Shown here: in pieces, positions 1 through 63,469 of the stretch
How the letters are laid out: each line of letters begins with the position of its first letter
How positions within the stretch are numbered: position 1 is the first letter of the stretch
NCBI GenBank assembly: GCA_964247055.1
Contig: OZ176051.1
Coordinates: 13,082,001-13,146,000 of the forward strand
Source: Paragordius varius
Lineage: Eukaryota > Animalia > Nematomorpha
DNA length: 64,000 nucleotides
Reading direction: 5' to 3'
Position numbers and translations under genes: made by a program
Notes under the pieces: generated by a model
What the model was told of the DNA's origin: nothing
The model's input: only the letters and a program-made list of their open reading frames with translations
Database searches by the model: none

Positions 1-3000
1 AGATATTGAAGATAAGGAAATAGTATATAATATATGTTAACATTGTATAGAAACAAATCGAACAATTACAAAATGGAATCAAAATTACGACTAATGACGG
101 CAATGAAAAAATTATCGAAAATGCTTTTGTCATTCGCGCTAACAAAGATGTTTTCGAAGTTTCTGGGGACAAACACAAGCTCAATATTGTCTTGATTGAC
201 TGTGCAAGTAAGATTCATAATGAAATATCGAAAAATATTGTTATCAGTAAATAGTTGTTTCATGCATTTATATTTGTTTTTCATATTAATACAGATGTAA
301 CGACAACAGGTATTTCTTGATTTTATTAATTTTTTAGTTGTGACGCCAACGACGACAGGATCACCTTTCAATACAACAACGGCTTCAACACCTATAACCA
401 CACCATCGGGACAAACAACTCCCTCTGGTCAAACGACTCCATCAGGTGAAACAACTCCATCTGGTGTAACTACACCATCTGGTGTTACAACGCCTTCAGG
501 GGAAACCACGCCCTCTGGAGCAACAACCCCATCTGGTCAAACAACTCCTTCCGGCTTAACGACACCTTCTGGTGCAACGACTCCATCTGGTGTTACAACG
601 CCTTCAGGAGCTACCACGCCATCTGGACAAACAACTCCATCAGGACAAACTACACCATCAGGAGCTACAACGCCATCAGGTGAAACTACACCTTCTGGAC
701 AAACAACTCCTTCCGGTCAAACCACTCCATCAGGTGCTACAACGCCTTCAGGAGAAACAACGCCATCCGGGCAAACAACTCCATCTGGTCAAACAACTCC
801 TTCAGGTCAAACTACACCATCAGGAGTGACCACACCATCGGGTGAAACTACACCCTCTGGTCAAACAACGCCGTCTGGTGAAACGACTCCATCAGGTGTA
901 ACTACACCTTCCGGTCAAACAACGCCATCAGGTCAAACCACTCCTTCAGGTCAAACTACACCATCTGGTCAAACCACTCCATCAGGTGCTACTACGCCCT
1001 CTGGTCAAACAACTCCATCAGGTGCTACTACACCTTCCGGTCAAACAACGCCATCCGGTCAAACAACTCCATCCGGTCAAACCACTCCTTCAGGTCAAAC
1101 CACTCCTTCAGGTCAAACCACTCCATCAGGTGCCACAACGCCTTCAGGAGAAACAACGCCATCCGGTCAAACAACTCCATCTGGTCAAACAACTCCTTCA
1201 GGTCAAACTACACCATCAGGAGTGACCACACCATCGGGTGAAACTACACCCTCTGGTCAAACAACGCCGTCTGGTGAAACGACTCCTTCAGGTGCAACTA
1301 CACCTTCCGGTCAAACAACGCCATCCGGTCAAACCACTCCTTCAGGTCAAACTACACCATCTGGTCAAACCACTCCATCAGGTGCTACTACGCCCTCTGG
1401 TCAAACAACTCCATCAGGTGCTACTACACCTTCCGGTCAAACAACTCCATCCGGTCAAACAACTCCTTCAGGTCAAACTACACCATCTGGTCAAACCACT
1501 CCATCAGGTGCTACAACGCCTTCAGGAGAAACAACGCCATCCGGTCAAACAACTACTTCAGGTCAAACTACACCATCAAGAGTGACCACACCATCGGGTG
1601 AAACTACACCCTCTGGTCAAACAACGCCGTCTGGTGAAACGACTCCTTCAGGTGCAACTACACCTTCCGGTCAAACAACGCCATCCGGTCAAACCACTCC
1701 TTCAGGTCAAACTACACCATCTGGTCAAACCACTCCATCAGGTGCTACTACGCCCTCTGGTCAAACAACTCCATCAGGTGCTACTACACCTTCCAGTCAA
1801 ACAACTCCATCCGGTCAAACAACTCCTTCAGGTCAAACTACACCATCTGGTCAAACCACTCCATCAGGTGCTACAACGCCTTCAGGAGAAACAACGCCAT
1901 CCGGTCAAACAACTCCATCTGGTCAAACAACTCCTTCAGGTCAAACTACACCATCAGGAGTGACCACGCCATCGGGTGAAACCACTCCATCAGGTGCTAC
2001 TACGCCTTCTGGTCAAACAACTCCATCAGGTGCTACTACGCCTTCAGGTCAAACAACACCATCTGGTCAAACCACTCCATCAGGTGCTACTACGCCTTCT
2101 GGGGAAACAACGCCATCCGGTCAAACAACTCCATCTGGTCAAACAACTCCCTCAGGTCAAACTACACCATCTGGTGTAACCACTCCATCAGGTGCAACTA
2201 CACCTTCCGGTCAAACAACTCCATCTGGTCAAACAACTCCCTCAGGTCAAACTACACCATCTGGTGTAACCACTCCATCAGGTGCAACTACACCTTCCGG
2301 TCAAACAACTCCATCTGGTGAAACAACTCCTTCAGGACAAACCACTCCATCTGGCCAAACTACACCTTCTGGTGAAACCACTCCATCTGGTCAAACAACG
2401 CCCTCTGGTCAAACGACTCCATCAGGTGAAACTACTCCATCTGGTGTGACTACACCATCTGGTCAAACAACTCCTTCAGGACAAACCACTCCATCTGTTG
2501 TTACAACGCCATCCGGTCAAACAACTCCATCTGGTCAAACAACTCCCTCAGGGCAAACTACACCATCTGGTGTAACCACTCCATCAGGTGCAACTACACC
2601 TTCCGGTCAAACAACTCCATCTGGTGAAACAACTCCTTCAGGACAAACTACACCATCCGGAGCTACCACGCTATCGGGTGCAACTACACCTTCCGGTCAA
2701 ACAACACCATCTGGTCAAACGACTCCTTCAGGTCAAACCACACCATCTGGCCAAACTACACCTTCTGGTGTAACCACTCCATCTGGTCAAACAACGCCCT
2801 CCGGTCAAACGACTCCATCAGGTGAAACTACTCCATCTGGTGTAACTACACCATCTGGTCAAACAACTCCTTCAGGACAAACCACTCCATCTGGTGATAC
2901 AACGCCTTCCGGAGCTACCACGCCATCCGGTGAAACTACGCCTTCTGGACAAACCACTCCATCAGGTGCTACTACACCTTCCGGTCAAACTACCCCATCT

Positions 3001-6000
3001 GGTGCAACAACACCATCTGGTGAAACAACGCCCTCCGGTCAAACCACTCCATCAGGTGTAACGACGCCATCCGGACAAACAACTACTTGTCCGCCAAGTA
3101 TTAAAAATATTTTTATAAAATTTTAGCCATTGATATATGTGAATTGGTGACGGAAAACGGTAATTACAGTTTGAGTGACTTAGTTGGGTGCACGTCTCCC
3201 TCTTGCAAGTATATTTACCTTTCTAAAAATTTATTAGGGATGATATTTATTTGGAACGCGATGGCGACAAAATTATATGGCCAATTGACAATCAAGACAT
3301 CTTTGGTGTATTTAATCCATCTGACGAAGACCAAGAAGAATTATATCAAACTCTCACCATTCTTTTCTACCTTAAAACAAAATTCAATCTTACATTTATT
3401 GCGGATAGCAATGTAAGTCATATTACACAAACATTTATAAATATGAAATGTAAAACGTCCAATATATATGACATAATTTTTTTGAATATTTAGCTTGTAT
3501 TGGTAACAAAACCAAACATCACGGATTACAATGAAATAGCAATTTGCAGTCTTTTCATTGAAAAGGATATCTATTCTGATTGCCTGTACCCACAAGATAT
3601 TGAAGATGAGGAAATAGTATATAATATATGTTAACATTGTATAGAAACAAATCGAACAATTACAAAATGGAATCAAAATTACGACTAATGACGGCAATGA
3701 AAAAATTATCGAAAATGCTTTTGTCATTCGCGCTAACAAAGATGTTTTCGAAGTTTCTGGGGACAAACACAAGCTCAATATTGTCTTGATTGACTGTGCA
3801 AGTAAGATTCATAATGAAATATCGAAAAATATTGTTATCAGTAAATAGTTGTTTCATGCATTTATATTTGTTTTTCATATTAATACAGATGTAACGACAA
3901 CAGGTATTTCTTGATTTTATTAATTTTTTAGTTGTGACGCCAACGACGACAGGATCACCTTTCAATACAACAACAACGGCTTCAACACCTATAACCACAC
4001 CATCGGGACAAACAACTCCCTCTGGTCAAACGACTCCATCAGGTGAAACAACTCCATCTGGTGTAACTACACCATCTGGTGTTACAACGCCTTCAGGGGA
4101 AACCACGCCCTCTGGAGCAACAACCCCATCTGGTCAAACAACTCCTTCCGGCTTAACGACACCTTCTGGTGCAACGACTCCATCTGGTGTTACAACGCCT
4201 TCAGGAGCTACCACGCCATCTGGACAAACAACTCCATCAGGACAAACTACACCATCAGGAGCTACAACGCCATCAGGTGAAACTACACCTTCTGGACAAA
4301 CAACTCCTTCCGGTCAAACCACTCCATCAGGTGCTACAACGCCTTCAGGAGAAACAACGCCATCCGGGCAAACAACTCCATCTGGTCAAACAACTCCTTC
4401 AGGTCAAACTACACCATCAGGAGTGACCACACCATCGGGTGAAACTACACCCTCTGGTCAAACAACGCCGTCTGGTGAAACGACTCCATCAGGTGTAACT
4501 ACACCTTCCGGTCAAACAACGCCATCAGGTCAAACCACTCCTTCAGGTCAAACTACACCATCTGGTCAAACCACTCCATCAGGTGCTACTACGCCCTCTG
4601 GTCAAACAACTCCATCAGGTGCTACTACACCTTCCGGTCAAACAACTCCATCCGGTCAAACAACTCCTTCAGGTCAAACTACACCATCTGGTCAAACCAC
4701 TCCATCAGGTGCTACAACGCCTTCAGGAGAAACAACGCCATCCGGTCAAACAACTCCATCTGGTCAAACAACTCCTTCAGGTCAAACTACACCATCAGGA
4801 GTGACCACACCATCGGGTGAAACTACACCCTCTGGTCAAACAACGCCGTCTGGTGAAACGACTCCTTCAGGTGCAACTACACCTTCCGGTCAAACAACGC
4901 CATCCGGTCAAACCACTCCTTCAGGTCAAACTACACCATCTGGTCAAACCACTCCATCAGGTGCTACTACGCCCTCTGGTCAAACAACTCCATCAGGTGC
5001 TACTACACCTTCCGGTCAAACAACTCCATCCGGCCAAACAACTCCTTCAGGTCAAACTACACCATCTGGTCAAACCACTCCATCAGGTGCTACAACGCCT
5101 TCAGGAGAAACAACGCCATCCGGTCAAACAACTCCATCTGGTCAAACAACTCCTTCAGGTCAAACTACACCATCAGGAGTGACCACGCCATCGGGTGAAA
5201 CCACTCCATCAGGTGCTACAACGCCTTCAGGAGAAACTACGCCATCCGGTCAAACAACTCCATCTGGTCAAACAACTCCTTCAGGTCAAACTACACCATC
5301 AGGTGCTACTACGCCTTCTGGGGAAACAACGCCATCCGGTCAAACAACTCCATCTGGTCAAACAACTCCCTCAGGTCAAACTACACCATCTGGTGTAACC
5401 ACTCCATCAGGTGCAACTACACCTTCCGGTCAAACAACTCCATCTGGTCAAACAACTCCCTCAGGTCAAACTACACCATCTGGTGTAACCACTCCATCAG
5501 GTGCAACTACACCTTCCGGTCAAACAACTCCATCTGGTGAAACAACTCCTTCAGGACAAACCACTCCATCTGGCCAAACTACACCTTCTGGTGAAACCAC
5601 TCCATCTGGTCAAACAACGCCCTCTGGTCAAACAACTCCATCCGGCCAAACAACTCCTTCAGGTCAAACTACACCATCTGGTCAAACCACTCCATCAGGT
5701 GCTACAACGCCTTCAGGAGAAACAACGCCATCCGGTCAAACAACTCCATCTGGTCAAACAACTCCTTCAGGTCAAACTACACCATCAGGAGTGACCACGC
5801 CATCGGGTGAAACCACTCCATCAGGTGCTACAACGCCTTCAGGAGAAACTACGCCATCCGGTCAAACAACTCCATCTGGTCAAACAACTCCTTCAGGTCA
5901 AACTACACCATCAGGTGCTACTACGCCTTCTGGGGAAACAACGCCATCCGGTCAAACAACTCCATCTGGTCAAACAACTCCCTCAGGTCAAACTACACCA

Positions 6001-9000
6001 TCTGGTGTAACCACTCCATCAGGTGCAACTACACCTTCCGGTCAAACAACTCCATCTGGTCAAACAACTCCCTCAGGTCAAACTACACCATCTGGTGTAA
6101 CCACTCCATCAGGTGCAACTACACCTTCCGGTCAAACAACTCCATCTGGTGAAACAACTCCTTCAGGACAAACCACTCCATCTGGCCAAACTACACCTTC
6201 TGGTGAAACCACTCCATCTGGTCAAACAACGCCCTCTGGTCAAACGACTCCATCAGGTGAAACTACTCCATCTGGTGTGACTACACCATCTGGTCGAACA
6301 ACTCCTTCAGGACAAACCACTCCATCTGGTGTTACAACGCCATCCGGTCAAACAACTCCCTCAGGGCAAACTACACCATCTGGTGCCACCACTCCATCAG
6401 GTGCAACTACACCTTCCGGTCAAACAACTCCATCTGGTGAAACAACTCCTTCAGGACAAACTACACCATCCGGAGCTACCACGCCATCGGGTGCAACTAC
6501 ACCTTCCGGTCAAACAACACCATCTGGTCAAACGACTCCTTCAGGTCAAACCACACCATCTGGCCAAACTACACCTTCTGGTGTAACCACTCCATCTGGT
6601 CAAACAACGCCCTCCGGTCAAACCACTCCATCAGGTGAAAGTACTCCATCTAGTGTAACTACACCATCTGGTCAAACAACTCCTTCAGGACAAACCACTC
6701 CATCTGGTGTTACAACGCCTTCCGGAGCTACCACGCCATCCGGTGAAACTACGCCTTCTGGACAAACCACTCCATCAGGTGCTACTACACCTTCCGGTCA
6801 AACTACCCCATCTGGTGCAACAACACCATCTGGTGAAACAACGCCCTCCGGTCAAACCACTCCATCAGGTGTAACGACGCCATCCGGACAAACAACTACT
6901 TGTCCGCCAAGTATTAAAAATATTTTTATAAAATTTTAGCCATTGATATATGTGAATTGGTGACGGAAAACGGTAATTACAGTTTGAGTGACTTAGTTGG
7001 GTGCACGTCTCCCTCTTGCAAGTATATTTACCTTTCTAAAAATTTATTAGGGATGATATTTATTTGGAACGCGATGGCGACAAAATTATATGGCCAATTG
7101 ACAATCAAGACATCTTTGGTGTATTTAATCCATCTGACGAAGACCAAGAAGAATTATATCAAACTCTCACCATTCTTTTCTACCTTAAAACAAAATTCAA
7201 TCTTACATTTATTGCGGATAGCAATGTAAGTCATATTACACAAACATTTATAAATATGAAATGTAAAACGTCCAATATATATGACATAAATTTTTTGTAT
7301 ATTTAGCTTGTATTGGTAACAAAACCAAACATCACGGATTACAATGAAATAGCAATTTGCAGTCTTTTCATTGAAAAGGATATCTATTCTGATTGCCTGT
7401 ACCCACAAGATATTGAAGATAAGGAAATAGTATATAATATATGTTTACATTGTATAGAAACAAATCGAACAATTACAAAATGGAATCAAAATTACGACTA
7501 ATGACGGCAATGAAAAAATTATCGAAAATGCTTTTGTCATTCGCGCTAACAAAGATGTTTTCGAAATTTCTGGGGACAAACACAAGCTCAATATTGTCTT
7601 GATTGACTGTGCAAGTAAGATTCATAATGAAATATCGAAAAATATTGTTATCAGTAAATAGTTGTTTCATGCATTTATATTTGTTTTTCATATTAATACA
7701 GATGTAACGACAACAGGTATTTCTTGATTTTATTAATTTTTTAGTTGTGATGCCAACGACGACAGGATCACCTTTCAATACAACAACAACGGCTTCAACA
7801 CCTATAACCACACCATCGGGACAAACAACTCCCTCTGGTCAAACGACTCCATCAGGTGAAACAACTCCATCTGGTGTAACTACACCATCTGGTGTTACAA
7901 CGCCTTCAGGGGAAACCACGCCCTCTGGAGCAACAACCCCATCTGGTCAAACAACTCCTTCCGGCTTAACGACACCTTCTGGTGCAACGACTCCATCTGG
8001 TGTTACAACGCCTTCAGGAGCTACCACGCCATCTGGACAAACAACTCCATCAGGACAAACTACACCATCAGGAGCTACAACGCCATCAGGTGAAACTACA
8101 CCTTCTGGACAAACAACTCCTTCCGGTCAAACCACTCCATCAGGTGCTACAACGCCTTCAGGAGAAACAACGCCATCCGGGCAAACAACTCCATCTGGTC
8201 AAACAACTCCTTCAGGTCAAACTACACCATCAGGAGTGACCACACCATCGGGTGAAACTACACCCTCTGGTCAAACAACGCCGTCTGGTGAAACGACTCC
8301 ATCAGGTGTAACTACACCTTCCGGTCAAACAACGCCATCAGGTCAAACCACTCCTTCAGGTCAAACTACACCATCTGGTCAAACCACTCCATCAGGTGCT
8401 ACTACGCCCTCTGGTCAAACAACTCCATCAGGTGCTACTACACCTTCCGGTCAAACAACTCCATCCGGTCAAACAACTCCTTCAGGTCAAACTACACCAT
8501 CTGGTCAAACCACTCCATCAGGTGCTACAACGCCTTCAGGAGAAACAACGCCATCCGGTCAAACAACTCCATCTGGTCAAACAACTCCTTCAGGTCAAAC
8601 TACACCATCAGGAGTGACCACACCATCGGGTGAAACTACACCCTCTGGTCAAACAACGCCGTCTGGTGAAACGACTCCTTCAGGTGCAACTACACCTTCC
8701 GGTCAAACAACGCCATCCGGTCAAACCACTCCTTCAGGTCAAACTACACCATCTGGTCAAACCACTCCATCAGGTGCTACTACGCCCTCTGGTCAAACAA
8801 CTCCATCAGGTGCTACTACACCTTCCGGTCAAACAACTCCATCCGGCCAAACAACTCCTTCAGGTCAAACTACACCATCTGGTCAAACCACTCCATCAGG
8901 TGCTACAACGCCTTCAGGAGAAACAACGCCATCCGGTCAAACAACTCCATCTGGTCAAACAACTCCTTCAGGTCAAACTACACCATCAGGAGTGACCACG

Positions 9001-12000
9001 CCATCGGGTGAAACCACTCCATCAGGTGCTACAACGCCTTCAGGAGAAACTACGCCATCCGGTCAAACAACTCCATCTGGTCAAACAACTCCTTCAGGTC
9101 AAACTACACCATCAGGTGCTACTACGCCTTCTGGGGAAACAACGCCATCCGGTCAAACAACTCCATCTGGTCAAACAACTCCCTCAGGTCAAACTACACC
9201 ATCTGGTGTAACCACTCCATCAGGTGCAACTACACCTTCCGGTCAAACAACTCCATCTGGTCAAACAACTCCCTCAGGTCAAACTACACCATCTGGTGTA
9301 ACCACTCCATCAGGTGCAACTACACCTTCCGGTCAAACAACTCCATCTGGTGAAACAACTCCTTCAGGACAAACCACTCCATCTGGCCAAACTACACCTT
9401 CTGGTGAAACCACTCCATCTGGTCAAACAACGCCCTCTGGTCAAACGACTCCATCAGGTGAAACTACTCCATCTGGTGTGACTACACCATCTGGTCAAAC
9501 AACTCCTTCAGGACAAACCACTCCATCTGGTGTTACAACGCCATCCGGTCAAACAACTCCCTCAGGGCAAACTACACCATCTGGTGTAACCACTCCATCA
9601 GGTGCAACTACACCTTCCGGTCAAACAACTCCATCTGGTGAAACAACTCCTTCAGGACAAACTACACCATCCGGAGCTACCACGCCATCGGGTGCAACTA
9701 CACCTTCCGGTCAAACAACACCATCTGGTCAAACGACTCCTTCAGGTCAAACCACACCATCTGGCCAAACTACACCTTCTGGTGTAACCACTCCATCTGG
9801 TCAAACAACGCCCTCCGGTCAAACCACTCCATCAGGTGAAAGTACTCCATCTAGTGTAACTACACCATCTGGTCAAACAACTCCTTCAGGACAAACCACT
9901 CCATCTGGTGTTACAACGCCTTCCGGAGCTACCACGCCATCCGGTGAAACTACGCCTTCTGGACAAACCACTCCATCAGGTGCTACTACACCTTCCGGTC
10001 AAACTACCCCATCTGGTGCAACAACACCATCTGGTGAAACAACGCCCTCCGGTCAAACCACTCCATCAGGTGTAACGACGCCATCCGGACAAACAACTAC
10101 TTGTCCGCCAAGTATTAAAAATATTTTTATAAAATTTTAGCCATTGATATATGTGAATTGGTGACGGAAAACGGTAATTACAGTTTGAGTGACTTAGTTG
10201 GGTGCACGTCTCCCTCTTGCAAGTATATTTACCTTTCTAAAAATTTATTAGGGATGATATTTATTTGGAACGCGATGGCGACAAAATTATATGGCCAATT
10301 GACAATCAAGACATCTTTGGTGTATTTAATCCATCTGACGAAGACCAAGAAGAATTATATCAAACTCTCACCATTCTTTTCTACCTTAAAACAAAATTCA
10401 ATCTTACATTTATTGCGGATAGCAATGTAAGTCATATTACACAAACATTTATAAATATGAAATGTAAAACGTCCAATATATATGACATAAATTTTTTGTA
10501 TATTTAGCTTGTATTGGTAACAAAACCAAACATCACGGATTACAATGAAATAGCAATTTGCAGTCTTTTCATTGAAAAGGATATCTATTCTGATTGCCTG
10601 TACCCACAAGATATTGAAGATAAGGAAATAGTATATAATATATGTTTACATTGTATAGAAACAAATCGAACAATTACAAAATGGAATCAAAATTACGACT
10701 AATGACGGCAATGAAAAAATTATCGAAAATGCTTTTGTCATTCGCGCTAACAAAGATGTTTTCGAAATTTCTGGGGACAAACACAAGCTCAATATTGTCT
10801 TGATTGACTGTGCAAGTAAGATTCATAATGAAATATCGAAAAATATTGTTATCAGTAAATAGTTGTTTCATGCATTTATATTTGTTTTTCATATTAATAC
10901 AGATGTAACGACAACAGGTATTTCTTGATTTTATTAATTTTTTAGTTGTGACGCCAACGACGACAGGATCACCTTTCAATACAACAACAACGGCTTCAAC
11001 ACCTATAACCACACCATCGGGACAAACAACTCCCTCTGGTCAAACGACTCCATCAGGTGAAACAACTCCATCTGGTGTAACTACACCATCTGGTGTTACA
11101 ACGCCTTCAGGGGAAACCACGCCCTCTGGAGCAACAACCCCATCTGGTCAAACAACTCCTTCCGGCTTAACGACACCTTCTGGTGCAACGACTCCATCTG
11201 GTGTTACAACGCCTTCAGGAGCTACCACGCCATCTGGACAAACAACTCCATCAGGACAAACTACACCATCAGGAGCTACAACGCCATCAGGTGAAACTAC
11301 ACCTTCTGGACAAACAACTCCTTCCGGTCAAACCACTCCATCAGGTGCTACAACGCCTTCAGGAGAAACAACGCCATCCGGGCAAACAACTCCATCTGGT
11401 CAAACAACTCCTTCAGGTCAAACTACACCATCAGGAGTGACCACACCATCGGGTGAAACTACACCCTCTGGTCAAACAACGCCGTCTGGTGAAACGACTC
11501 CATCAGGTGTAACTACACCTTCCGGTCAAACAACGCCATCAGGTCAAACCACTCCTTCAGGTCAAACTACACCATCTGGTCAAACCACTCCATCAGGTGC
11601 TACTACGCCCTCTGGTCAAACAACTCCATCAGGTGCTACTACACCTTCCGGTCAAACAACGCCATCCGGTCAAACAACTCCATCCGGTACCACTCCTTCA
11701 GGTCAAACCACTCCTTCAGGTCAAACCACTCCATCAGGTGCCACAACGCCTTCAGGAGAAACAACGCCATCCGGTCAAACAACTCCATCTGGTCAAACAA
11801 CTCCTTCAGGTCAAACTACACCATCAGGAGTGACCACGCCATCGGGTGAAACCACTCCATCAGGTGCTACTACGCCTTCTGGTCAAACAACTCCATCAGG
11901 TGCTAGTACGCCTTCAGGTCAAACAACACCATCTGGTCAAACCACTCCATCAGGTGCTACTACGCCTTCTGGGGAAACAACGCCATCTGGTCAAACAACT

Positions 12001-15000: not shown

Positions 15001-18000
15001 ATCTAGTAAATGTATTATTATCTGTTTGAACCCATAAACAGTAATGAACTGGATCAAAAGTTACTAGAAAATCCTTAAACAGCCGTAGAGATTCTCCATT
15101 TATTTTTTTGAATTACGTTTTTAAGATTGATTATATGATTTATATATAATTGGTTTAAATCCAGTTTGGACACCTGCTATGTACTCTTGAATATTTTAAG
15201 AAGTTTAGAAATTTGTTGATGATGGCTATTATACGGTGGTTCTGACAATAATGGTGATTGTTGAAAGAAATTAGGAAGTTCTAATCGTTTGGCCAAACAC
15301 GATTTCACAAGTTTAGTTAATAAGATGTAAAGTCTTATTGGGATTGGATAATCATTGGGTCTAACGATTTGTTAATGATTTAAGGAAGATAAAAATCCTT
15401 AAATTTACAAGATGGAACTAGAATGTACTTAGAATTCAAATGAAAAGAAAAGGTCTACTTTAAGACCATCTGGATTGGTTTTGGAATTAGTAGAACCCGA
15501 TATTCAGTTGTATTAGAACTCGACAGATTCATTTAATAGCTTTATATTAGAATGTTTTTTTTGAAATGGAAAAAGGGAGATCAATATGATGGATCATTGG
15601 CACCATGATTCAGTTGATGTTGGTTAGGTTAAAATTCGATTAAAATAATTAGTGAATTTAAAAAAGTCGTAACTAGGGTTGTGCTGACCAAGTCATGGTT
15701 TGGACAATTGACCGGGTCATGACAGGTCAAGGACTATTTATTTTTTACAGCTGTTTTTTATAATTGCAAGTTTCTTTTTTGGAAGAGATAGTAGGATTTT
15801 ATTGTTTATATATATTTATTAAAAAATATGAATTAAATATTTTATATAAAATAATCGATATATAAATATTCTCTATTAAAAATATATTAATTGTTAAACA
15901 TGCATCCTCATAACATTAGTATTAAGCATCCATGTGAGTTTTCGACAAAACAGTACATAAAACAAACTAAATAAAAAAGATATTTAAAGCCACAAATTGG
16001 CAAAATATATTAATTCTAAATATGCATTAATATTATTAAAAATAAAGTTTTTCTTTAAAATTGATTGAATATTTCTAATAATAAATAAAATGTTTAAATA
16101 TTTAACCAATAAAATTCGTGACATTATTAGTCAAACACTTATTATTTGAGCATTATTTTCATAATCTCCAATATACACTTAAATATTATTACAGTTTTTT
16201 ATAGTTTCAAAATAATTGATAACAAATTTTTACTTTGACTTCGTACTTTTTATAATCAAAGCTAAATTTAAGTTATGACACTTCTTTTACAGGTTCTGGG
16301 AAAGTTTTAGCGCTCAATATATCGATTAATTTGGAACCTGTGTTGCCTTTTGATAATATAATAATGTGTTTTATTATCGCAGGTTAATAGTATTTTGTAG
16401 CTAATAGGATAAGATAGCGATTTCCTCATTTGATTTATAGTAAAAACATATATGAATCAGATTTGGCTTCGGATGTGTGTCATATGTAATTTTAATTCTG
16501 CTATTATGCTGATATTTATTAGGTCGAAATAATTGTGAATTATGAATGCTCTATATCTCCTAAAAATATCATTAATTAAAAAAATAGATCAACTGTCAAT
16601 AAAATAATTTGTTTATTAAAATCATTATAGGATTTTGGATTTGCATTTCAAAATAGTCATTTGTAGCCAACATTTTTTCACTCACAACCATTCATTGTTC
16701 AGCACATTGTGCATTCCCAAATAATATTAATTTTAAAAATATAGTTTAATCAAGTCCGAATATTTTAAAATTATGATAAAAATAAATTCTCTATATTTCA
16801 CATTTTTAGTTCTTTACTTAAATGAAGTAATCTGCAGAAATGCAATTATAGAGAATTTTTTCTAGGGATATTCAGCTAACAAAATCGCCAATATCAAACA
16901 TTCGTTAAAATGTTGGGAAAGAGGAATGTTTAGAAATTTTTTGTAATATATCATTTCTTCAATAGTGTCCTTTAACATTTGAAGTTGGTCCTTGAACGCT
17001 CAAGTTGGTCCTTAAACACTTCAAGTTGGTCCTTGAACACACATTTTATTAATCCTTCAACTTTTTTTAAGTTTCCAACTTTTTTCAATAAAATCATATA
17101 TCATTCATGTATTTTATAATTATATTTTTAATTAACATAAGGTTTATATCAATAAAAACTTTTAATCATTTGAAAACCCTACATTTTTAGTATTTTCTTA
17201 ATTATTTTAGATTTATAAGATTTTAACATTAATTCGAAAAAAGGGTTATTATACACTTTTTCGTGAAAAACATTTAAAATAATTTTGTTAAATGGAAAAA
17301 AATAAACAAAAAGTGGTTTTGAATAGAATTTTTAATTTTAAAGTAATTATACAATAAAAAAAAATTGAGTGAGAAAATAAAATAATAAATGCAAAAGTTT
17401 TGTTACAGTGGTTAAATTCCAACTTGAAGTGTTAAGGACCCACTTGATGTGTTCAAGGAAACTCTTGAAATGTCCTAGGACCAAATGGTATATTATTATA
17501 AATTACATAAATTTAATCTATTTGAAATTTATTCTATTTTGATATTATTTATACATTATTGAAAACATTTATCAATTTTTTCACCATTAATTTAATATAC
17601 AGCTTATATTGACACCAAACGACAATGGATCAAGTGATAATATCGCATTTTGCAGTTTGTTTATAGAAAAAAATATTTATTCGGATTGTCTATACCCTCA
17701 GGATATAGAAGATATGGTACTATTTTTTTAACTTTCATAGGCTGAAATTAAACAAATGAATAATGGAATCCAAATAACGTTGAAAAATGGGCAAAATAAA
17801 TTAGTTAAAAATGCGTTTATCATTCGTATAAATAGTGACGCATTAAACATATCTGGAACGAAACATAAATTAAATATAATTTTGGCCGATTGTTCAGGTA
17901 AATATATTTTATATATTTTTTTAACATATTTCTATATCCATTTTTATCAATAGATATATCAACAACAGGTATTTTTGTTAATTAATTTTTAGTTATAACG

Positions 18001-20238
18001 CCAACAACTACCGGTTCACATTTCAATACAACAACCCCTACACCGATAACCACGCCTACAAGAGTGACGACGCCATCCGGTCAAACAACCCCATCGGGTC
18101 AAACAACTCCATCAGGTGAAACAACTCCTTCAGAAACTACACCATCCGGTGAAACAACTCCTTCAGGACAAACTACACCATCAGCTACCACGTCATCGGG
18201 TGCAACTACACCTTCCGGTCAAACAACCCCATCTGGTCAAACAACTCCTTCAGGTCAAACTACACCATCTGGTGTAACTACTCCATCAGGTGCAACTACA
18301 CCTTCCGGTCAAACAACGCCATCCGGTCAAACAACTCCATCAGGTGAAACAACTCCTTCAGGACAAACTACACCATCCGGTGAAACAACTCCTTCAGGAC
18401 AAACTACACCATCCGGAGCTACCACGCCATCGGGTGCAACTACACCTTCCGGTCAAACAACCCCATCTCGTCAAACAACTCCTTCAGGTCAAACTACACC
18501 ATCTGGTGTAACTACTCCTTCAGGACAAACTACACCGTCCGGTGAAACAACTCCTTCAGGACAAACTACACCATCCGGAGCTACCACGCCATCGGGTGCA
18601 ACTACACCTTCCGGTCAAACAACTCCATCGGGTCAAACAACTCCATCAGGTGAAACAACTCCTTCAGGACAAACTACACCGTCCGGTGAAACAACTCCTT
18701 CAGGACAAACTACACCATCCGGAGCTACCACGCCATCGGGTGCAACTACACCTTCCGGTCAAACAACTCCATCAGGTGATACAACTCCTTCAGGACAAAC
18801 TACACCATCTGGTGTAACCACTCCATCAGGTGCAACTACACCTTCCGGTCAAACAACTCCATCTGGTCAAACAACTCCTTCAGGACAAACTACACCATCG
18901 CAAGCTACCACGCCATCGGGTGCAACTACGCCTTCAGGTCAAACTACACCCTCTGGTCAAACCACTCCATCAGGTGCTACTACGCCTTCAGGGGAAACAA
19001 CGCCATCCGGTCAAACAACTCCATCTGGTGAAACAACTCCTTCAGGACAAAGTACACCATCCGGAGCTACCACGCCATCGGGTGCAACTACACCTTCCGG
19101 TCAAACAACTCCATCTCCTCTAACTACATGCCCACTTGGTATTTATTCTTTCTACATACATAGATTATTGATAGATATACAAAGACATATATCATTTTAA
19201 TATAAATAATTTTTTTGCTCACCATACCTTTCTTCTTAAATATCAATATATATCTATTTATTTCTTTTTATCTTCTCTCTTTTTTATAATTAAGGTTTAA
19301 TTTGTCCTATAATATAGGCATCCAACAAATAAATTTTATTAGACAAGTGCTATTTTAAAAATATAAAATATATTTCTACACAATTAAACTAAAGTTTGTT
19401 TACTTTTATTACCGTGTACTTTCTAGCACCTTTCCTAACATTACGTTATTACAGTATGAGTAAGTATACATTGCTAGAAAGTTATTAATTATTGCCAAAA
19501 TGTAAATAGAACAAAAGGCAGTATTATTGGCTAATAAGTGAAAAAATAACTAGCCAATAATAATGCCCTTTGTTATATTTACTATTTGGCAATAATTAAT
19601 ACTTTCTAGCAACCTATACTAACTCAGACTGTATTGTATATTAAGATAAATAGATACTATTAATTGTATATACAATTGACAGTACAGTAGCGTTTCTTAA
19701 ATAACAGATGGTTAAAATTACATTTTTATTTCTTACATTTATTTAATTTAAAAAAAATTCTTTATATCATACACTACTGCATTTCGATTGGCTAACAATA
19801 ATGGGAATTGACCATCATCACAGAGCGTACATATTATTGATTTAAAATATAATCTCGTTTAGGCATACCAATATGCGATCTCGTTACAGAAAGTGGATTG
19901 TACAATTTATCTGATATCGTAACCTGTACTTCACCATCATGCAGGTTTTTTTTATTTTTTTATTGATGCATCAGATGGGTTAATTTTATCAAATAGTATT
20001 TTGCAATACAAAAGTTTAATCGTTTACCCCATTTACTTTATAATGTATTAAGTGGAGAGATTTATCTGGAAAGAACCAAAAATGCTGTTATTTGGCCATC
20101 CAAAGATAATGATACCTTCCATCTATTTTCCAGCAATGAAGATGACAGGCAACGAAAGATATATGAAACATTAACCATAATTTTGTATTTGAAAACCAAG
20201 TTCCACATCTCATTTGAGGCTGATAGCAATGTACGTAA

Positions 20239-20280
<42 letters not shown>

Positions 20281-21103
20281 TTATAAGCATAAAAGTTTTT
20301 AGCTAGTAGATTCGGGTTCATGTTGCAATAAAAACTGATAAAACCGATTCAAGCATTCAGCTGTTTCTAAAAATTTTATTTATGGATTATAAGGAAAATT
20401 TTGCTAATCAAGTAATACATAATTTAAAAGCGTTTTTTGACTTCAATTAAAGCATATAAAATGCAATCAGAACTAAAAAATAATTATAAAATTTGGTTAT
20501 ATTAGCTAGTTAATCGTTATAATTTATATCAGAAATGCATTGTATAAAAACGTTAATTTTTTTTGAATTGCGTCTTGACTTTTTACATAACTTTAACCCG
20601 TTTGGCGCGGTGGGAAAGATAAAGTTTTAAATAATATTTATCGCAAATTTTAAATTTTTATTCTAAATGTAAAAAGCTCTAAAATTAATTGGATATATAA
20701 TGTTATTTTTAATTTTTGGGATTACATGTTTATAAATAAAATTACTCAAAACTGTTTGTAATAATCTAACAAAGGAAAAAAAGGTCGTTTTTTAAAATTA
20801 AGATATGCATTAACCGGTCTCTCTATTAATATATTGCTTAAATCTCGTAACTCAAATTCAATACGCCAGAGCAAGATTTTTGAAGGGTAATAAAGCCTAG
20901 CATGTCTATGATAATTATTTAACTATGTGTAAATAGCTTGTCTTGGAGAAAAAAGAATTAATTGCTCCCGATGCTGTTGCATTCTGCACCTTATTCATCC
21001 GAAATGATATCTTTTCTGATTGTTTCCATGGCAAAGATGTAGAGAATATGGTAAGATAGTTTCTTTATAGTTTTAGCCATTACTCAAAGTCCCGATTTTT
21101 GAT

Positions 21104-21135
<32 letters not shown>

Positions 21136-24100
21136 TTTACATGAATTTAGGTACAAGTAAGACAAGATACAAAATCTATTACAATTCAAGAGAATAAGAA
21201 TGGCCAAACTATTGATCGCGTAATTAATGACGCCTTCATAGTATATGTCAATCACAAGGCAATCAATACTTTGGGTGACAAACAAAAATTAAACATTGTC
21301 ATTGCTAATTGTGAAGGTATGATTCGTACAAAATTTTTATCAATAATTTTACCAGTTTTGTTTAAATTTCGGGGAACATTGTATACGTAAGTATACCAAT
21401 CGGGATGATAACTATATATCTCAAATAGTAAATGCATCATATAACTTTTGTTAATTGCTCAATCGAAGATTCCCAAAATTATCGCATACTATTATATTTT
21501 TTTGTTTTAAGATAAAAGCATTATAGCTTAAACTTTTCAAAAAATTATTCCGTTATTTTATTTAGATTATTTCTATTGTTTGGTATAACACGGTAATAAG
21601 TATATTTTTAAAAACTCAATTTTTAATTATACTTTTTTACAAACAAAATATCATTCTTATTTTATTTTATAATATTTATTTCATCCATATCGAAAATGGA
21701 CATGGTTTTAATGCAAAAATAATTAAAAAACGAATCTCTCAACCCATTCACTATCAAAATTAGAATAATTTTAAATCTGAATAATATTAACGTTTCTCTT
21801 TAAAAGAGTGACAAACAAGGATCACAATCATTTCCCAATCAAAAAAAACGTTTTCCTAGTCAATCACGATTTGCTGGTCAATCAAATCGATTTCCCAGTC
21901 AATTAAAATAATTCCCCAGTCAATCGAATCTATTTTCCAATTGAAAATTTTCCCAGTTAACAAAAACATTGGTTTTATTTTAATGATAAATATCGAAACA
22001 AGATACAAAAAGAACTTTTAACACTATGAGCATATCAATGGGATATTATTTTTCATAAAAACATAATTGAATGACATTCTATATAAGCCACAATCATTAA
22101 TGACTTTTATGTTTTATTAATTGGATTAGTATTTATGGTTTTTGAGATATTTTTAAATATTTAAAAAAAATTATTTTATTGATTTCGCATTAATATTCCG
22201 TAACCTATAAAATCTATAGTTTCGGATAGAAAATAAATAATATACCATTTTCGCCAATCGGTTATTTCACCCTTCAAATTGCTTTTTAAAATGCCAAATT
22301 TGTCGATAAAAATTCGGGAAAAATAGCTAAATCAATTTTAAATATATAAAAATAAAAAGGATAATTTAAAAGAAAAATATATTATAAAGTCGCAAATGTT
22401 ATATCTTTAAAGTTTTAAATGACTAATTTGAGATGAAAATGGTATACTTTTAAAATTTTAGATTTAATAGGTTAGCCCCGAATATTTGTACGAACTATAA
22501 AATAAAAAAATAAATGTTTTCTTAAAAATATCTCACGAACCATAATTTCATCCACATAATATATTTCTTTTAAAGAATTCTGTTATTAATGATTGTGTAT
22601 TGGCATATATAGAAAAAATTGTCATTCAATAATTATATACTTATTAAAAAACATCCCATTAATAAGTTCATAGTGGTAAAAAGTTATTTTTATATCTTGT
22701 TTTTATATTTATCATTATAAATAAAACCGTTTTTATTGACTGGAAAAATGTTTCGATTTACTGATAAAATGTATTGAGTGACAAGGAAAATGTTTCGATT
22801 CACTGGGAAAATGTTTCGCACTGGAAAAATGTATCTATAGACTGGGAAAACGTTTCGATTGACTGGGAAAATGATATATACTATGAATTTACCATTATAA
22901 TTTTTTTAATTCCTAATCAAAATTAAAATAATATCTTTTAATAATTTGATGCCGCTGATATGCTATCTCGTTAACTTTAAACTTAACTTAAATTTTTTTT
23001 TCATTTTACATAGTTAACGAAAGATATGATTCTTTAGCGACATAAGTGTTAAAAATAAATTGTATTTTATCGATTCTATCCCACTTCAAACCTATGTTTC
23101 ATGATAATTTATTAAAAAGTAAAAACTTCGGAGCTGCATAAAAAGTCAGAAATAATTTTCTGTACAAATTTAAAATATGTTTGCCAATAGAGGTTATGGC
23201 AATCCAAATATTTTATACATATGGTACTAGTCATTTTACTAAAAACAAGAAGTCCGTGTTCTCAAAAATTATTCGCGTTTTTATTATCGCTAAAAAGATC
23301 AATTTGAAAAATATGGAATAAACTTTCTTCTGAAAAAATTATTAATAAGAATTAATTTATATTAAGAAATTATCTACTTGGCTATAAATCTCGGTTTTGG
23401 ACAAAACTGATTCCCATATTTTATAAATTGAAACCGTGATATATATTAAAAATTAATAAAATTGGAATACATTATTTTTTATAAAATTGGTTGTATTTAT
23501 AATTCGAGAATCGACAATTTTTAAGATTATTAATGGTTGAAATGCCAGCTTTATAGTTTGTATACCAAATATTATTTTTTCATAACATAAAATATAGAGT
23601 GATCGTTTGATGCACTTATTTAAAAAAGCCTTTTTTATAACGAAATTATTCTAAATAAAAATTTGGTTAATGTGGAATCTACCAAGAAAATTATAAATCT
23701 TTATATATTTAAAGTTCTATAAACTATACTCTAGTCATTTAAAAAAATACTATTTTCACACAAATTTTCATTTATCTTTTTTAACACACCATTTTACCTT
23801 AAGGTAGTATTATAGCGCGATTAAGGTATTTGAGCAATTAACCCAAATTTATAGATATGTTTAGCATTCTAGTGCTACATTTTTTTTTAATTTTATAAAA
23901 AATTCTCATCTCAATTTTTTTTGCCGCCAATTTTTTGTATAAATATTCTTAAATCGCTAAAGGAAGGCAAATAAATGTATATTATGGTTGAAATGTAAAT
24001 AACTTTAAAAAGCTTTCGTATCTTCCCAGCAATGTATCAGCTGTTCGTTTCGATCATGTTTTGGGGTCGTCCCGATTTTAAACTAAAATATAAATATATA

Positions 24101-26590
24101 ATACATGAAAAAACTATGATTAATCAATTCTAATATCGGTAGCTTATTTATGAAATAGCTCTGGATAAAAATACCCCAAAAAAGCTAATTAGGGAAAAAA
24201 AGTTAATAAAATGTTAAACATGAATATAATAGCAACATTTTTGGATATGACACTCAGCGTATTATACCAACTAAAATAAACGAAATATTGAATAATATTT
24301 TTTTTATTGTGTTTTTAGAAACTACGACAACCACTACATCCATCAGCACGCTACCTTCGCTCTCGACAAGTATTATTTTTAATTAACTACATAATTTATC
24401 TTAACTTTTGGGATTACCAAAATATATTATTAAGATTCATATAACATTTTTCCAATCTTAAGTTTTTTTGAATCATGCTTTCTTACATTTCTTATAGGAT
24501 TTTATAAAAAATTTAAGTATTCTCCTTTTTAAAATAATTTTTATGTATCAATAACAAATTTGTATTAGCTATGCCCATCTCTTCTACCACTGATATAACT
24601 GGAGAAACAACAACAGAACCTACAACACCTTATACCTCACCAGATGGACAAACCACTACTTCAGATTCACGTATATTATTTATATAAGTGTGCTTAATGT
24701 GTATAAATGTTTGAAAATAAATACGTTGGATACAAGAACATAAATTATAATTGTAGCAATAAATTTTAAATTTTATTATAGGGGTAACCGTGATTGATTG
24801 TCCTGACGAAGATAATACAAGTAAGATAATTTATCAACCAAAATTTGATTTATTCATTATATTTTCAGAATAGAAATAAAAATTTATTTTTTATTCAGCT
24901 AAAACTCCAGCTTATGATATTGGAGCCATTTGCTTTGTGGTAGAAAGCGCAGGACTTTATGACATACGACAAGAATTGAATTTACCAAAGTATATACATA
25001 GCACAATATATCGTTTTCGTTGATTCGTAAATTTCTTTTTTTATGGAACATTGTAGTCAGAAAAAATGGTGTCTTGTAAATGTCGTATTTTATTTATTAT
25101 AGAGAGGCACAATTTAAAACACCAACCTACCTCTCTAAACAAAACAACAGTGTACAATGGACGGTAGATGGTGATAAAATTTTCCAAGCTTCTGATAATG
25201 TGTACACTGCATTAGATACAAATACTCTATCCGACATTTCAATGGCTAACAAATACTTTAACCTTAAAATGAAGGCTAGAAGTGATGTATGGATAAAATT
25301 ATAATCATTTTTGTTAATCTCTGTTTTTATAATGATGACTGGTTAATTATTACTGTTTTTCTCTTTAGTTATCATTGGAAATCAGCCAAGACACCAAGAT
25401 GAACAAATTCTGTGGTTTACATTTTGGCTCTGCTGGTCTGGCTTCTAGGTGCTATGATCTCTCCATACCAAAATCTTCTACATTGAAAAAAGTAAATTAA
25501 CATTTTCCATGATATACCAAATAAAATGCCTACACATACTCATTCATATAAACTATGATGGGTAAAAAAACAAAATATTTCAAAAGAAACGATAAGGTTT
25601 GCATATTAATCGGTCTAATTTTTCATGGATAAAAAATAAGTATGATCGCAACAAATTTTAGTATCGCCTATTCATTCATTATAAAATTATTTTATAAATA
25701 TTTTTTTTCAGTTGTCGGTGGTACAAAAGGATGACCATATAGCTGTTAATGAATACTTTGAGGATAGTGTTATTCGTAAAGCTATCAGTAAGACGTTTGT
25801 TACTGAAATGTCGTTTGAAAACGCCGTTTTAGAACCAATCGCAATGGGCCAACATAAACTTGATATCATCCTTCAGAACTGCACAGATCGTAAATATTTT
25901 TTATAAAAAAAATAATTTCATCATTTTATATTAATTTGTTTAATTGACCAAACTTAAGTTGTCAAATATTCAACTCTAATTTATATTTGATACATTTATA
26001 TAGAATGCTTAGATGAAACCGTTTGGTCTAACTATACACTGCCTGATCATACCAAAGATCAAAACAAAAGTATTTGATTTTTCATTCTGTTAATGCCTTA
26101 GGCGGTGATATTGATTGTATTTATTGAAAAATTATATTTTTATTTTTTTGTAGCGGCCTACTTGGAATATGACTGTATGTGTGAGCTTGTCCAAGAACCT
26201 GGTGTTTACAACATCTTAAACTTGAATGACCGTTTACCAAAATTGGAGTATATATACATTTTATTTTATTAATCTCTTACTTTTGAAAACACATTATATA
26301 TTTGCAATAATATAGATGGATTTTTTATATGATTAAATCCATTCTCTTCTTATGTATAGAAACGTTAAATTATACCCCGAAAATAAGGCTATTGCCCTCA
26401 AGCTTATAGCCAACTTTAACCCCGTCGAAGAAAATGGCAAGATAACATATCAATTATTTAATGATCAAGAGCAAACTTATTTGAGACAATTAACTGATGT
26501 AGCAGATTACAGTATATCCGTTAATGCTGATGTAAGTGGAAACTTTTTAACAACTAAACAATATCGATTGTCATAAAAATAAATTATGAG

Positions 26591-26638
<48 letters not shown>

Positions 26639-27037
26639 GTTAAATTCAATATCATGACACCCCCGGGAACTAAATCATCTACCATTTATATAGCCGATCT
26701 AACTAGTAAAAAGATCAAATACATTGAATCAGCCGATTATCCAAACGTAATTTTTTGAGAAATATAAATGAAAATTTAATTATTATATCAATCCATAAAA
26801 AATTATTCCATCTTGTTGTAAATTTATATATTATTTGTTAAATCTGTTTTACAGATAACCGTATCACAAAGTCGAGCTGGAGTAAGCATGAATTATATGA
26901 CAAACAGTGGAGAAGAGAAATTTGCTTATTTCAAGAACTTTGTCATTACTCAAGTTGATGTTCCATCCACACCTGAAAACAAGGAAATCTTTGATGAAGC
27001 TTACCTAGTCGTATCCAAGCCAATTAAGGATTGTTAA
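1..27037 (+). CDS. Giant multi-exon mucin-like secreted glycoprotein (5' end upstream of window): (XTTPSG)n PTS exons alternating with a ~180-aa Cys-containing domain; about 5,290 aa in window
   Basis: Phase-consistent GT-AG chain: 1-22, 51-207, 295-309, 338-3097, 3127-3208, 3238-3412, 3494-3616, 3645-3801, 3889-3903, 3932-6910, 6940-7021, 7051-7225, 7307-7429, 7458-7614, 7702-7716, 7745-10111, 10141-10222, 10252-10426, 10508-10630, 10659-10815, 10903-10917, 10946-13255, 13285-13366, 13396-13558, 17603-17716, 17741-17897, 17954-17968, 17993-19138, 19863-19944, 20053-20230, 20937-21050, 21151-21316, 24319-24369, 24569-24670, 24782-24820, 24899-24989, 25103-25286, 25369-25491, 25712-25889, 26004-26069, 26154-26247, 26360-26531, 26639-26746, 26855-27037 (ends KPIKDC-TAA). 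Sum 15,874 nt. The ORF-track stops at 3126, 6939, 10140 and 13284 are the TAG of 3' splice sites. Confidence 0.85.
338..3097 (+). repeat. PTS exon 1: coding 18-nt tandem repeat, roughly 150 x (Q/E/A/V)TTPSG
   Basis: 2760 nt, phase 1-1, open frame; ORF 340..3126. Confidence 0.95.
3127..3801 (+). CDS. Inter-PTS Cys domain copy 1 (4 exons); near-identical copies at 6940-7614 and 10141-10815, partial copy at 1-207
   Basis: Spliced translation TIDICELVTENGNYSLSDLVGCTSPSCK/DDIYLERDGDKIIWPID...YQTLTILFYLKTKFNLTFIADSN/LVLVTKP...IAICSLFIEKDIYSDCLYPQDIED..I/KQIEQLQNGI...GDKHKLNIVLIDCA. Confidence 0.85.
3932..6910 (+). repeat. PTS exon 2: roughly 160 x XTTPSG
   Basis: 2979 nt, phase 1-1; 612 nt longer than PTS exon 3, matching an internal 612-nt duplication. 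Confidence 0.95.
7745..10111 (+). repeat. PTS exon 3: roughly 127 x XTTPSG
   Basis: 2367 nt, phase 1-1; ORF 7747..10140. Confidence 0.95.
10946..13255 (+). repeat. PTS exon 4: roughly 124 x XTTPSG
   Basis: 2310 nt, phase 1-1; 3-nt deletion near 11689 keeps frame. Confidence 0.95.
13285..17897 (+). CDS. Inter-PTS Cys domain copy 4 (chimeric; contains a 4-kb intron)
   Basis: Exons 13285-13366, 13396-13558, 17603-17716, 17741-17897; IAFCSLFIEKNIYSDCLYPQDIEDM and HKLNIILADC match copy 1. Confidence 0.85.
15040..15500 (-). pseudogene. Degenerate non-LTR (LINE) reverse transcriptase fragment in mucin intron
   Basis: Minus-strand motifs in LINE RT order, with stops and frameshifts: LIPKP (~15490), RP, QTGFKP (~15160), DFLVTFDPVH (~15050; compare D..KAFD.V.H). 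Confidence 0.5.
16946..17492. mobile_element. Foldback-type MITE with ~20-bp subterminal repeats (cttcaagttggtccttgaaca); related copy 55101-55556
   Basis: Inverted arms; ends TATATCATTT...AAATGGTATA. Confidence 0.7.
17993..19138 (+). repeat. PTS exon 5 (more diverged): roughly 59 x XTTPSG
   Basis: 1146 nt, phase 1-1; starts VITPTTTGSHFNTT, ends PLTTCPL. Confidence 0.92.
19452..19631. mobile_element. Palindromic Tc1/mariner-type MITE (TA-flanked); second copy ~63266-63451
   Basis: ta|cagtatgag...ttgctagaaagt ... actttctagcaa...cagactg|ta; near end-to-end hairpin. Confidence 0.75.
19863..21316 (+). CDS. Inter-PTS Cys domain copy 5
   Basis: IPICDLVTESGLYNLSDIVTCTSPSC/GEIYLERTKNAVIWP...YETLTIILYLKTKFHISFEADSN/...VAFCTLFIRNDIFSDC/...GDKQKLNIVIANC; same intron phases; mostly missed by ORF track. 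Confidence 0.85.
21827..22880. mobile_element. Foldback element with ~300-bp inverted arms and ~22-bp ttcccagtcaatcgaa subrepeats; contains MITE 22241-22446
   Basis: Arm 21827-~22130 is the reverse complement of ~22580-22880; same arms at 43777-44865. Confidence 0.75.
24899..25889 (+). CDS. Cys domain copy 6 (divergent)
   Basis: ICFVVESAGLYDI / YLSKQNNSVQW...KYFNLKMKARSD / FCGLHFGSAGLASRC / GQHKLDIILQNC; intron phases 1,2,0,0,1 as in other copies. Confidence 0.75.
26154..27037 (+). CDS. Cys domain copy 7 (C-terminal, most divergent)
   Basis: MCELVQEPGVYNI matches ICELVTENGNYSL; same 4-exon layout; terminal Cys then TAA. Confidence 0.7.
26595..26632. repeat. (TA)n microsatellite next to 3' splice site; others at ~20245-20280 and ~63453-63510, (AAT)n at ~21106-21134
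   Basis: Directly visible simple repeats. Confidence 0.9.
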
Positions 27038-61633: not shown

Positions 61634-63469
61634 TGTATTAAAGCACTCAATCAATAGTTTTTGTGGTTAATATCAATGTTTCAAAATCATTATTGATATC
61701 ATGGAGATTTACTTGATTCAAATGACAAAGTTCTAAATTGGAATGGGATTAAATTTCACTGGTCTTTTTAAGCGGTGCAAGGATATATAAGCGTAACAAT
61801 GAGGATTATTAAATATTTATGAAACAAATTTGTGCAATCTGTAATTAGTTTATGTTGGTATGTTACTTCCTAATGTTCAGACCATGCACTGTAATTACCA
61901 TTCCTAAAATTATATTCACTATGAAATATGGATTCATTTCGCAATTTATACGCGAGAGAAGACTGAATGACAGCAGAATTTATCTTATTTTGCGTGATGC
62001 TTTCATAGGAATATTAATGAAGAGCTTAAGCGAAAAAAAAAATTTTACATACAAATAGTACGCATATAATTTTATCATATCTATCACATCTATATAAAAA
62101 TGTGGTGTCCAAAATTAAAAATTAAACCATATACATGTATATATATAAATGCTAAAAAATGGGATATCAGCACACTTACGATCTAAAATAAGCATTGAGT
62201 CCAATGATTTATTCTGTAAAATAAAAAAAATGAACAAAGTACTTATATAGATATGTTTTTTCCAGTGCTCTATTTACTTATTTATAAATATTATAATGGT
62301 TGCAAAATCGCATAAATGTATCTATATTATTTTAGCGCATATGTGGTATTAATAATAAAAAAATGTACTTTAATAGTCTATCAATAATAAATCTTATTCT
62401 ATGTTATAGTATCTATTTTTAAGGATATTTCACTTTTTAACCTTATCATTTTTGGTTGTATTATTGTGTTATTGCGTTTTGTCATTAATAAACACACCTG
62501 GAAAATGGGAAGGTTTATTCATTAGATGCCTGACACTATTATAAGGGTGTATAGCTTTATTGATTTTTAGGGTTTAGTTTTATTGGGAAAATCAGGTACG
62601 CTCTGTTTAAAATAATACTCTAGTGTTTTTTTGCCATAATTAAATGCATCAATTAACTGAACCTTAACTTTTGCACCGTTGAGGATTATTGAATTCAACA
62701 AAAACAACAACAATAAAAAAATGGTAAAAAAATATGAAATAATATATATAAATTTGATACAAATAAAATCCAAATAATGTTAGTTATATCTAAGGAAAAA
62801 GGAGTAAAATCGATATTGCATTGATACTTTTACTGTTTCATACACCAATTATGTAGCATCTATTATTATGAAGCTCTTACTATCAATAAAATATTTATAA
62901 TATTAATTCTAAGCATAACCTCATAAAGATAACAATTAACATATTATGTTCATCTAAATTAATGATTTGGTTTCTATCTATAATACATTCCTATGTGTCA
63001 TATATATTTCCTTTATCTTACGAAAATTTTTGATCATAGATTTGGTAAGGCGTATTATTTTTAATAAACTTTTAAATATTTATAACCACGTGCTGTCTAT
63101 TAGCAAATTTTGGTATTTTATATGTCCCCTTTGTATTTTTTCTGACAGAAGCTAGTAATACCAACTGTAAATTCAATCTTAATATTAAAATTAATCATTA
63201 AGCATAACAGAGTGTACTAGCGACTCAAAAATAACTAAATTTTATATTATATATATATATATATATAGTATGAGTATACATTGCTAGGGTATCAATTATT
63301 GCCAAATAGTAAAAACAACAAAGGGCAGTTTTATTGGATAATAATACTAATAAGTGAAAAAATAACTCAAAGCCAATAATACTGCCCTTTGTTTTATTTA
63401 CTATTTTGCAATAATTAATAACTTTCTAGCAATGTATACTTACTCATACTGTATATATATATACCTATA

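Follow-up and report, generated by a model that had tools for sequence, protein, structure and literature searches.

A very large mucin-like gene with a repeated cysteine-containing module in the hairworm Paragordius varius

What does a hairworm encode in a stretch of DNA with long arrays of one short repeat, and is the product a mucin of a known kind? The stretch in question is the first 27,037 nucleotides (nt) of a 64,000-nt region of the Paragordius varius genome (assembly GCA_964247055.1, contig OZ176051.1, positions 13,082,001 to 13,146,000 of the forward strand), hereafter the window, in which a first-pass annotation had read a giant mucin from the letters alone. We found that the locus is a real coding gene, very large and mucin-like, of which the window holds the 3' part. 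Its overall architecture, in which blocks rich in proline, threonine and serine (PTS) alternate with a folded domain, is familiar; the module itself fits no catalogued family or solved structure and is so far seen in hairworms only.

Gene model and coding evidence

In an independent rebuild, splice sites placed by hand defined 44 exons and 43 introns (all GT-AG) at 1-27037. The exons join into a single open frame that encodes 5,290 amino acids (aa) in 15,873 bases and has its only stop at 27035-27037. This is the model that the first-pass annotation had proposed, with 44 exons in one frame, about 5,290 aa and the N-terminus outside, and its estimate of roughly 620 XTTPSG repeats is borne out by the 617 in-register xTTPSG hexamer units that we counted across five PTS blocks (exact TTPSG, n=603). 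The TAGs that it had placed in introns (3126, 6939 and others) do lie there: those at 3124-3126, 6937-6939, 10138-10140 and 13282-13284 each supply the acceptor AG of a 29-nt intron. Of the 43 introns, 16 measure 28-29 nt and two 24 nt, and retention of nearly any intron introduces a stop within or shortly past it. We inferred the splice model from the paralogous exon structure and a homologue in Gordionus.

The repeat region is coding DNA under purifying selection and not a satellite, because its variation is almost confined to third codon positions and because the dN/dS of the modules is near 0.2. Over the 617 units, codon positions 1 and 2 of T-T-P-S-G hardly vary (entropy of 0-0.1 bit, at five of the six hexamer residues), and third positions carry 1.0-1.75 bits. 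Stops are abundant in the other five reading frames of the repeats, and the 11.5 kb of repeat contain neither frameshifts nor stops. Among paralogous modules, dN/dS is 0.24 for D1-D4 and 0.18 for D1-D5, with synonymous sites saturated for D4-D5. Mucin-type PTS domains are defined by at least 40% Ser plus Thr and more than 5% Pro, and are often repetitive (PMC4948705); all five blocks have this composition, with S+T of 50.1-50.4%, P of about 17% and S+T+P of about 67%. G+C content is about 25% outside coding DNA and 50% in 338-13255 and 17993-19138, where the 18-nt tandem arrays lie.

All parts of the gene lie on the plus strand. Exons 1-3 (1-309), identical to spacers 1-3 at 357-359 of 360 bases, form the end of a partial module, D0, of a gene that enters from upstream; the window thus begins within an amplified unit, so the full protein must exceed 5,290 aa. 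Block 1 follows (exon 4, 338-3097; 919 aa, 149 units), then module D1 (exons 5-9, 3127-3903, with A at 3127-3208, B at 3238-3412, C at 3494-3616, D at 3645-3801 and a 15-nt exon at 3889-3903; introns of 29, 29, 81, 28, 87 and 28 nt, in order), block 2 (exon 10, 3932-6910; 992 aa, 161 units), D2 with its 15-nt exon (exons 11-15, 6940-7716), block 3 (exon 16, 7745-10111; 788 aa, 127 units), D3 with its 15-nt exon (exons 17-21, 10141-10917) and block 4 (exon 22, 10946-13255; 769 aa, 123 units). Module D4 spans 13285-17968 (exons 23-27, at 13285-13366, 13396-13558, 17603-17716 and 17741-17897, plus a 15-nt exon) and includes a 4,044-nt intron; it precedes block 5 (exon 28, 17993-19138; 381 aa, 57 units) and D5 (exons 29-32, 19863-21316, at 19863-19944, 20053-20230, 20937-21050 and 21151-21316). 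Beyond a 3,002-nt intron, three small, phase-1, Thr-rich linker exons of 51, 102 and 39 nt (exons 33-35, 24319-24820), placed by frame only and the weakest-supported part of the model, lead to the divergent module D6 (exons 36-39, 24899-25889), and a linker and the divergent terminal module D7 (exons 40-44, 26004-27037) close the protein with a Cys and the stop. The alternation of PTS blocks of 380-990 aa with a domain of about 180 aa that had been described at the outset thus stands for the blocks, which run from 381 to 992 aa, but not for D6 and D7, which are parted by short linkers only and by no large PTS block.

The 15-nt exons are phase-1 micro-exons that lie ahead of every PTS exon (295-309, 3889-3903, 7702-7716, 10903-10917 and 17954-17968); each is bordered by an intron of 24-28 nt, and skipping it would leave the frame intact.

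The cysteine module and its relatives

The module is about 180 aa long and is encoded by four exons, with seven complete copies in addition to the partial D0. Exon order, phases (1-2-0-0-1) and strand are constant in all seven, and profiles of exons A, B and C matched seven times each and that of exon D eight times, all on the plus strand and inside 1-27037. Cysteines are confined to the modules, with seven in each of D1-D5, five in D6 and four in D7, so that the C-terminal part formed by the last two has nine in about 400 aa; an H-x8-C motif is present in D exons. An AF2 model of the Gordionus orthologue of D6 is folded and mostly beta (pLDDT 70.8, pTM 0.65).

We searched 1.84 billion proteins with a profile of the five B exons and obtained two credible matches, both from Gordionus sp.: XP_065324922 (P0002, LOC135931615) and XP_065322587 (P0003, 'mucin-22-like'). 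A third carrier of the module, Gordionus LOC135929787 (P0007), came from a separate search. Exons 36-44 tile P0002 gaplessly, junction by junction, at 47-71% identity (51-71% for exons 36-39 over residues 2-187, 47-62% for exons 40-44 over residues 189-394), covering in turn residues 2-25, 27-88, 89-128, 129-187, 189-209, 212-240, 242-298, 299-334 and 335-394, and the two proteins have the same terminal Cys. P0002 is probably orthologous to exons 36-44 and, because it is colinear with them, a second genome supports the splice model of D6-D7, though P0002 is itself an automatic model. In P0003 and P0007, the module alternates with S/T-rich stretches that lack a regular TTPSG hexamer. Relatives beyond Gordionus were absent from the databases searched, within limits of length and sensitivity. 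Taken by themselves, the matches place the window very probably in a nematomorph distinct from that Gordionus assembly, or at a paralogous locus. The suggestion of an undescribed, lineage-specific family therefore survives in its second part, as matches came from Gordionus only, and has to be narrowed in its first: relatives are already in RefSeq ('uncharacterized', 'mucin-22-like'), although we found no paper on them, and a literature search combining Nematomorpha with mucin returned nothing relevant.

Whole-domain searches used the Gordionus proteins, and the window exons were searched individually. On that footing, Pfam (exons and homologues), PDB sequence and fold searches gave no family for the module. 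For CysD (Mucin2_WxxW), the protein model contains no WxxW and neither exons nor homologues had a Pfam match; VWD had no match in the window, and at the C-terminus (D6, D7) there was no Pfam match and neither a VWD-C8-TIL assembly nor a cystine knot. MUC2/MUC5-type mucins also have three VWD-C8-TIL units at their N-terminus, a part of the hairworm protein that lies upstream of the window. Pfam likewise found no SEA domain in any exon or Gordionus homologue and, in the same set, no six-Cys chitin-binding peritrophin-A domain, whose Cys spacing is also unlike that of the module. The spacer thus does lack recognisable CysD, VWD, SEA and peritrophin-A signatures, as first noted, and on the features testable here the protein does not belong to the gel-forming mucin family. 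These searches point to a module family or fold with no catalogued assignment, lineage-restricted in the databases covered.

It is conceivable, if rather unlikely, that the module is instead a far-diverged known fold, either COLFI/fibrinogen-like or a galectin/ConA-like beta-sandwich lectin, with inherited oligomerisation or glycan binding. Galectin-like and collagen-COLFI resemblances were seen, but they are weak. Profile similarity to COLFI (PF01410) was at control level (hhalign probability <1%), and Pfam identifies retrieved COLFI domains yet not the module. Gly-X-Y runs, a feature of fibrillar collagens, are absent from the protein model.

Proposed function, extent and history of the gene

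By analogy with known mucins, we think it fairly probable that the protein is a secreted gel or coat polymer, with the modules as periodic stickers and array length setting the mesh. A secreted polymer is the simplest reading because no membrane anchor is present in the window (top 19-residue hydropathy 1.3; 0.14 over the last 60 aa). O-glycosylation stiffens mucin PTS stretches into rods, and the Thr and Ser residues here may be densely O-glycosylated to give stiff bottle brushes. At about 0.25 nm per residue for a glycosylated rod, rods of 770-990 residues would set modules about 200 nm apart. Each beta-rich module would probably be closed by a disulfide from its first helix to its last strand; where the number of cysteines is odd, at least one of them finds no partner within its own module and could form inter-chain disulfides. 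The modules would then cross-link chains, by disulfides or non-covalently, into a gel or coat whose mesh size would be tuned as the array grew or shrank by unequal crossover. The model also contains 29 N-sequons. The matrix may be the hairworm larval cyst wall, which is clear and of a composition stated as unknown (PMC6892959), or egg strings, the sperm drop or a cuticle coat; the data favour none of them. A bolder version, which we regard as unlikely, holds that hairworms independently built a gel-forming mucin in which a fold not described before takes the place of CysD/VWD in cross-linking and the TTPSG rods may carry both O-GalNAc and glycosaminoglycan, in a matrix such as the larval cyst wall.

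Were the Ser-Gly of TTPSG xylosylated throughout, the protein would be a chondroitin-type proteoglycan core, or a mucin-proteoglycan hybrid, whose glycosaminoglycan chains form a swelling polyanionic matrix. Under the rule that attachment sites are Ser-Gly dipeptides no more than eight positions from an acidic residue (PMC2063922), 285 of the 617 Ser-Gly dipeptides qualify, 105 of them with D or E directly next, and the Gly is nearly invariant. However, there are about twice as many Thr as Ser residues (1416 vs 735), acid density is low for a proteoglycan, and the S/T-rich spacers of P0003 and P0007 do without the regular hexamer. As T-T-P is, moreover, a typical GalNAc-type mucin sequence, we consider a proteoglycan core distinctly unlikely.

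The C-terminal region raises the question of whether the window holds two adjacent genes, a mucin ending near exon 32 and a separate, P0002-like, two-module gene (exons 33 or 36 to 44). The annotation of P0002 makes it a protein of its own, 395 aa long, that begins at the position of exon 36, and the 3,002-nt intron and exons 33-35 lack homologue support. Yet where P0002 starts, the window has an AG acceptor followed by Tyr in place of Met, the phase-1 GT that closes exon 32 is the one seen at every other D exon, and exons 33-35 are phase-1 symmetric as well as Thr-rich; P0002 has no signal peptide, so it looks 5'-truncated. Two genes are, on balance, quite improbable. Sequencing runs X5-X9, which bear other organism labels, contain 6-82% of the words of 24550-26560; they are from related hairworms or worm-carrying hosts, and some might be spliced RNA.

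Several points weigh against a single secreted mucin-type polymer. Besides the separate annotation of P0002, the join across the intron at 21317-24318 is one of frame and phase alone, and the N-terminus lies beyond the window, so a signal peptide is not visible. A second structure model was poor (pLDDT 47.6), and an RNA label is absent from every listed sequencing run holding the stretch.

Within the gene, a unit of 3.2-3.8 kb comprising a PTS exon, the module exons and their introns has recently been amplified or homogenised. Spacers 1-3 differ at 1-6 of 876 bases, introns included (99.3-99.9% identity of first units), and block 3 lacks one 612-nt stretch of block 2 and otherwise differs from it by four substitutions. 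Identity is 97-99.8% among blocks 1-4 (97.6% for 1 vs 2, 97.1% for 3 vs 4) and only about 87% for block 5; indels between blocks are multiples of 3, almost all of them of 18. For about 200 bases D4 hardly differs from D1, and homogenisation with D1-D3 ends within exon 24 near 13440; because D4 diverges from D1 there, the amplified unit starts and stops inside exon B. Unequal crossover would be the simplest route. The near-identical units at 1-13440 could instead be in part a product of assembly, or an amplified array without function, the true protein being shorter or not made. The closeness of the spacers and the lack of a listed run that holds the stretch and is recorded as RNA would fit this reading. 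It is nevertheless very improbable, given that substitutions and in-frame indels are particular to each copy, that the repeat is free of frameshifts and stops, and that among the older copies, D4-D7, there is evidence of purifying selection and a homologue.

Neighbouring features and known systems

Pieces of an Epac/RAPGEF-type gene (45275-61654, minus strand; DEP, cNMP-binding, RasGEF_N and RasGEF matches in separate exons) converge on the mucin gene. Between its exons sits a broken Ty3/Gypsy-like long terminal repeat retrotransposon on the plus strand (about 47900-52100), with zinc knuckle, protease, reverse transcriptase and RNase H matches and several frameshifts. In long introns, 21-nt tandem repeats occur as oppositely oriented pairs whose members are separated by a few hundred bases (16967-17040 with 17422-17473, 55138-55178 with 55470-55532, and also 21821-21939 with 22721-22873), which suggests small inverted-repeat transposons. 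One family is seen both at 17.0-17.5 kb and at 55.1-55.5 kb. A 65-aa open reading frame at 37897-38094 (plus strand), of protein-like composition and with no Pfam match, is possibly an exon of another gene.

For the secreted matrices of hairworms, a parasitic phylum that has received little study, the mucin-like gene is a concrete candidate. It is also a clear example of a gene made longer when a multi-exon unit, with introns of 28-29 nt, was recently amplified. Its module lends itself to structure determination, which may bring in a further domain family or fold and an independent way to cross-link mucus.

Among known systems, the Gordionus models XP_065324922, XP_065322587 and LOC135929787 have the module family in common with the window gene; they are automatic and apparently partial, have no described function, and in none is there a giant xTTPSG array. 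Secreted proteins that set Cys domains between glycosylated S/T or Ser-Gly stretches are known from other ecdysozoans too, namely insect peritrophin-A mucins and the C. elegans chondroitin proteoglycans CPG-1 and CPG-2 (PMC2063922), of which CPG-2 has peritrophin-A spacers. Unlike both groups, the window gene has a module with no CBM14 match and about three times longer, and its repeats are Thr-dominated. The secreted SEA/PTS proteins of Xenopus are likewise a lineage-expanded family with PTS stretches and a folded domain as beads on a string (PMC4948705). The hairworm module differs in having no SEA match and in being Cys-rich and mostly beta. With MUC2, MUC5AC and MUC5B, the window gene has in common long repetitive PTS exons, a periodic Cys-containing folded domain, arrays of variable length and the lack of a membrane anchor. 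In MUC2 and MUC5AC, CysD is thought to act as a periodic sticker; the hairworm protein may work in a similar way, with an unrelated module.
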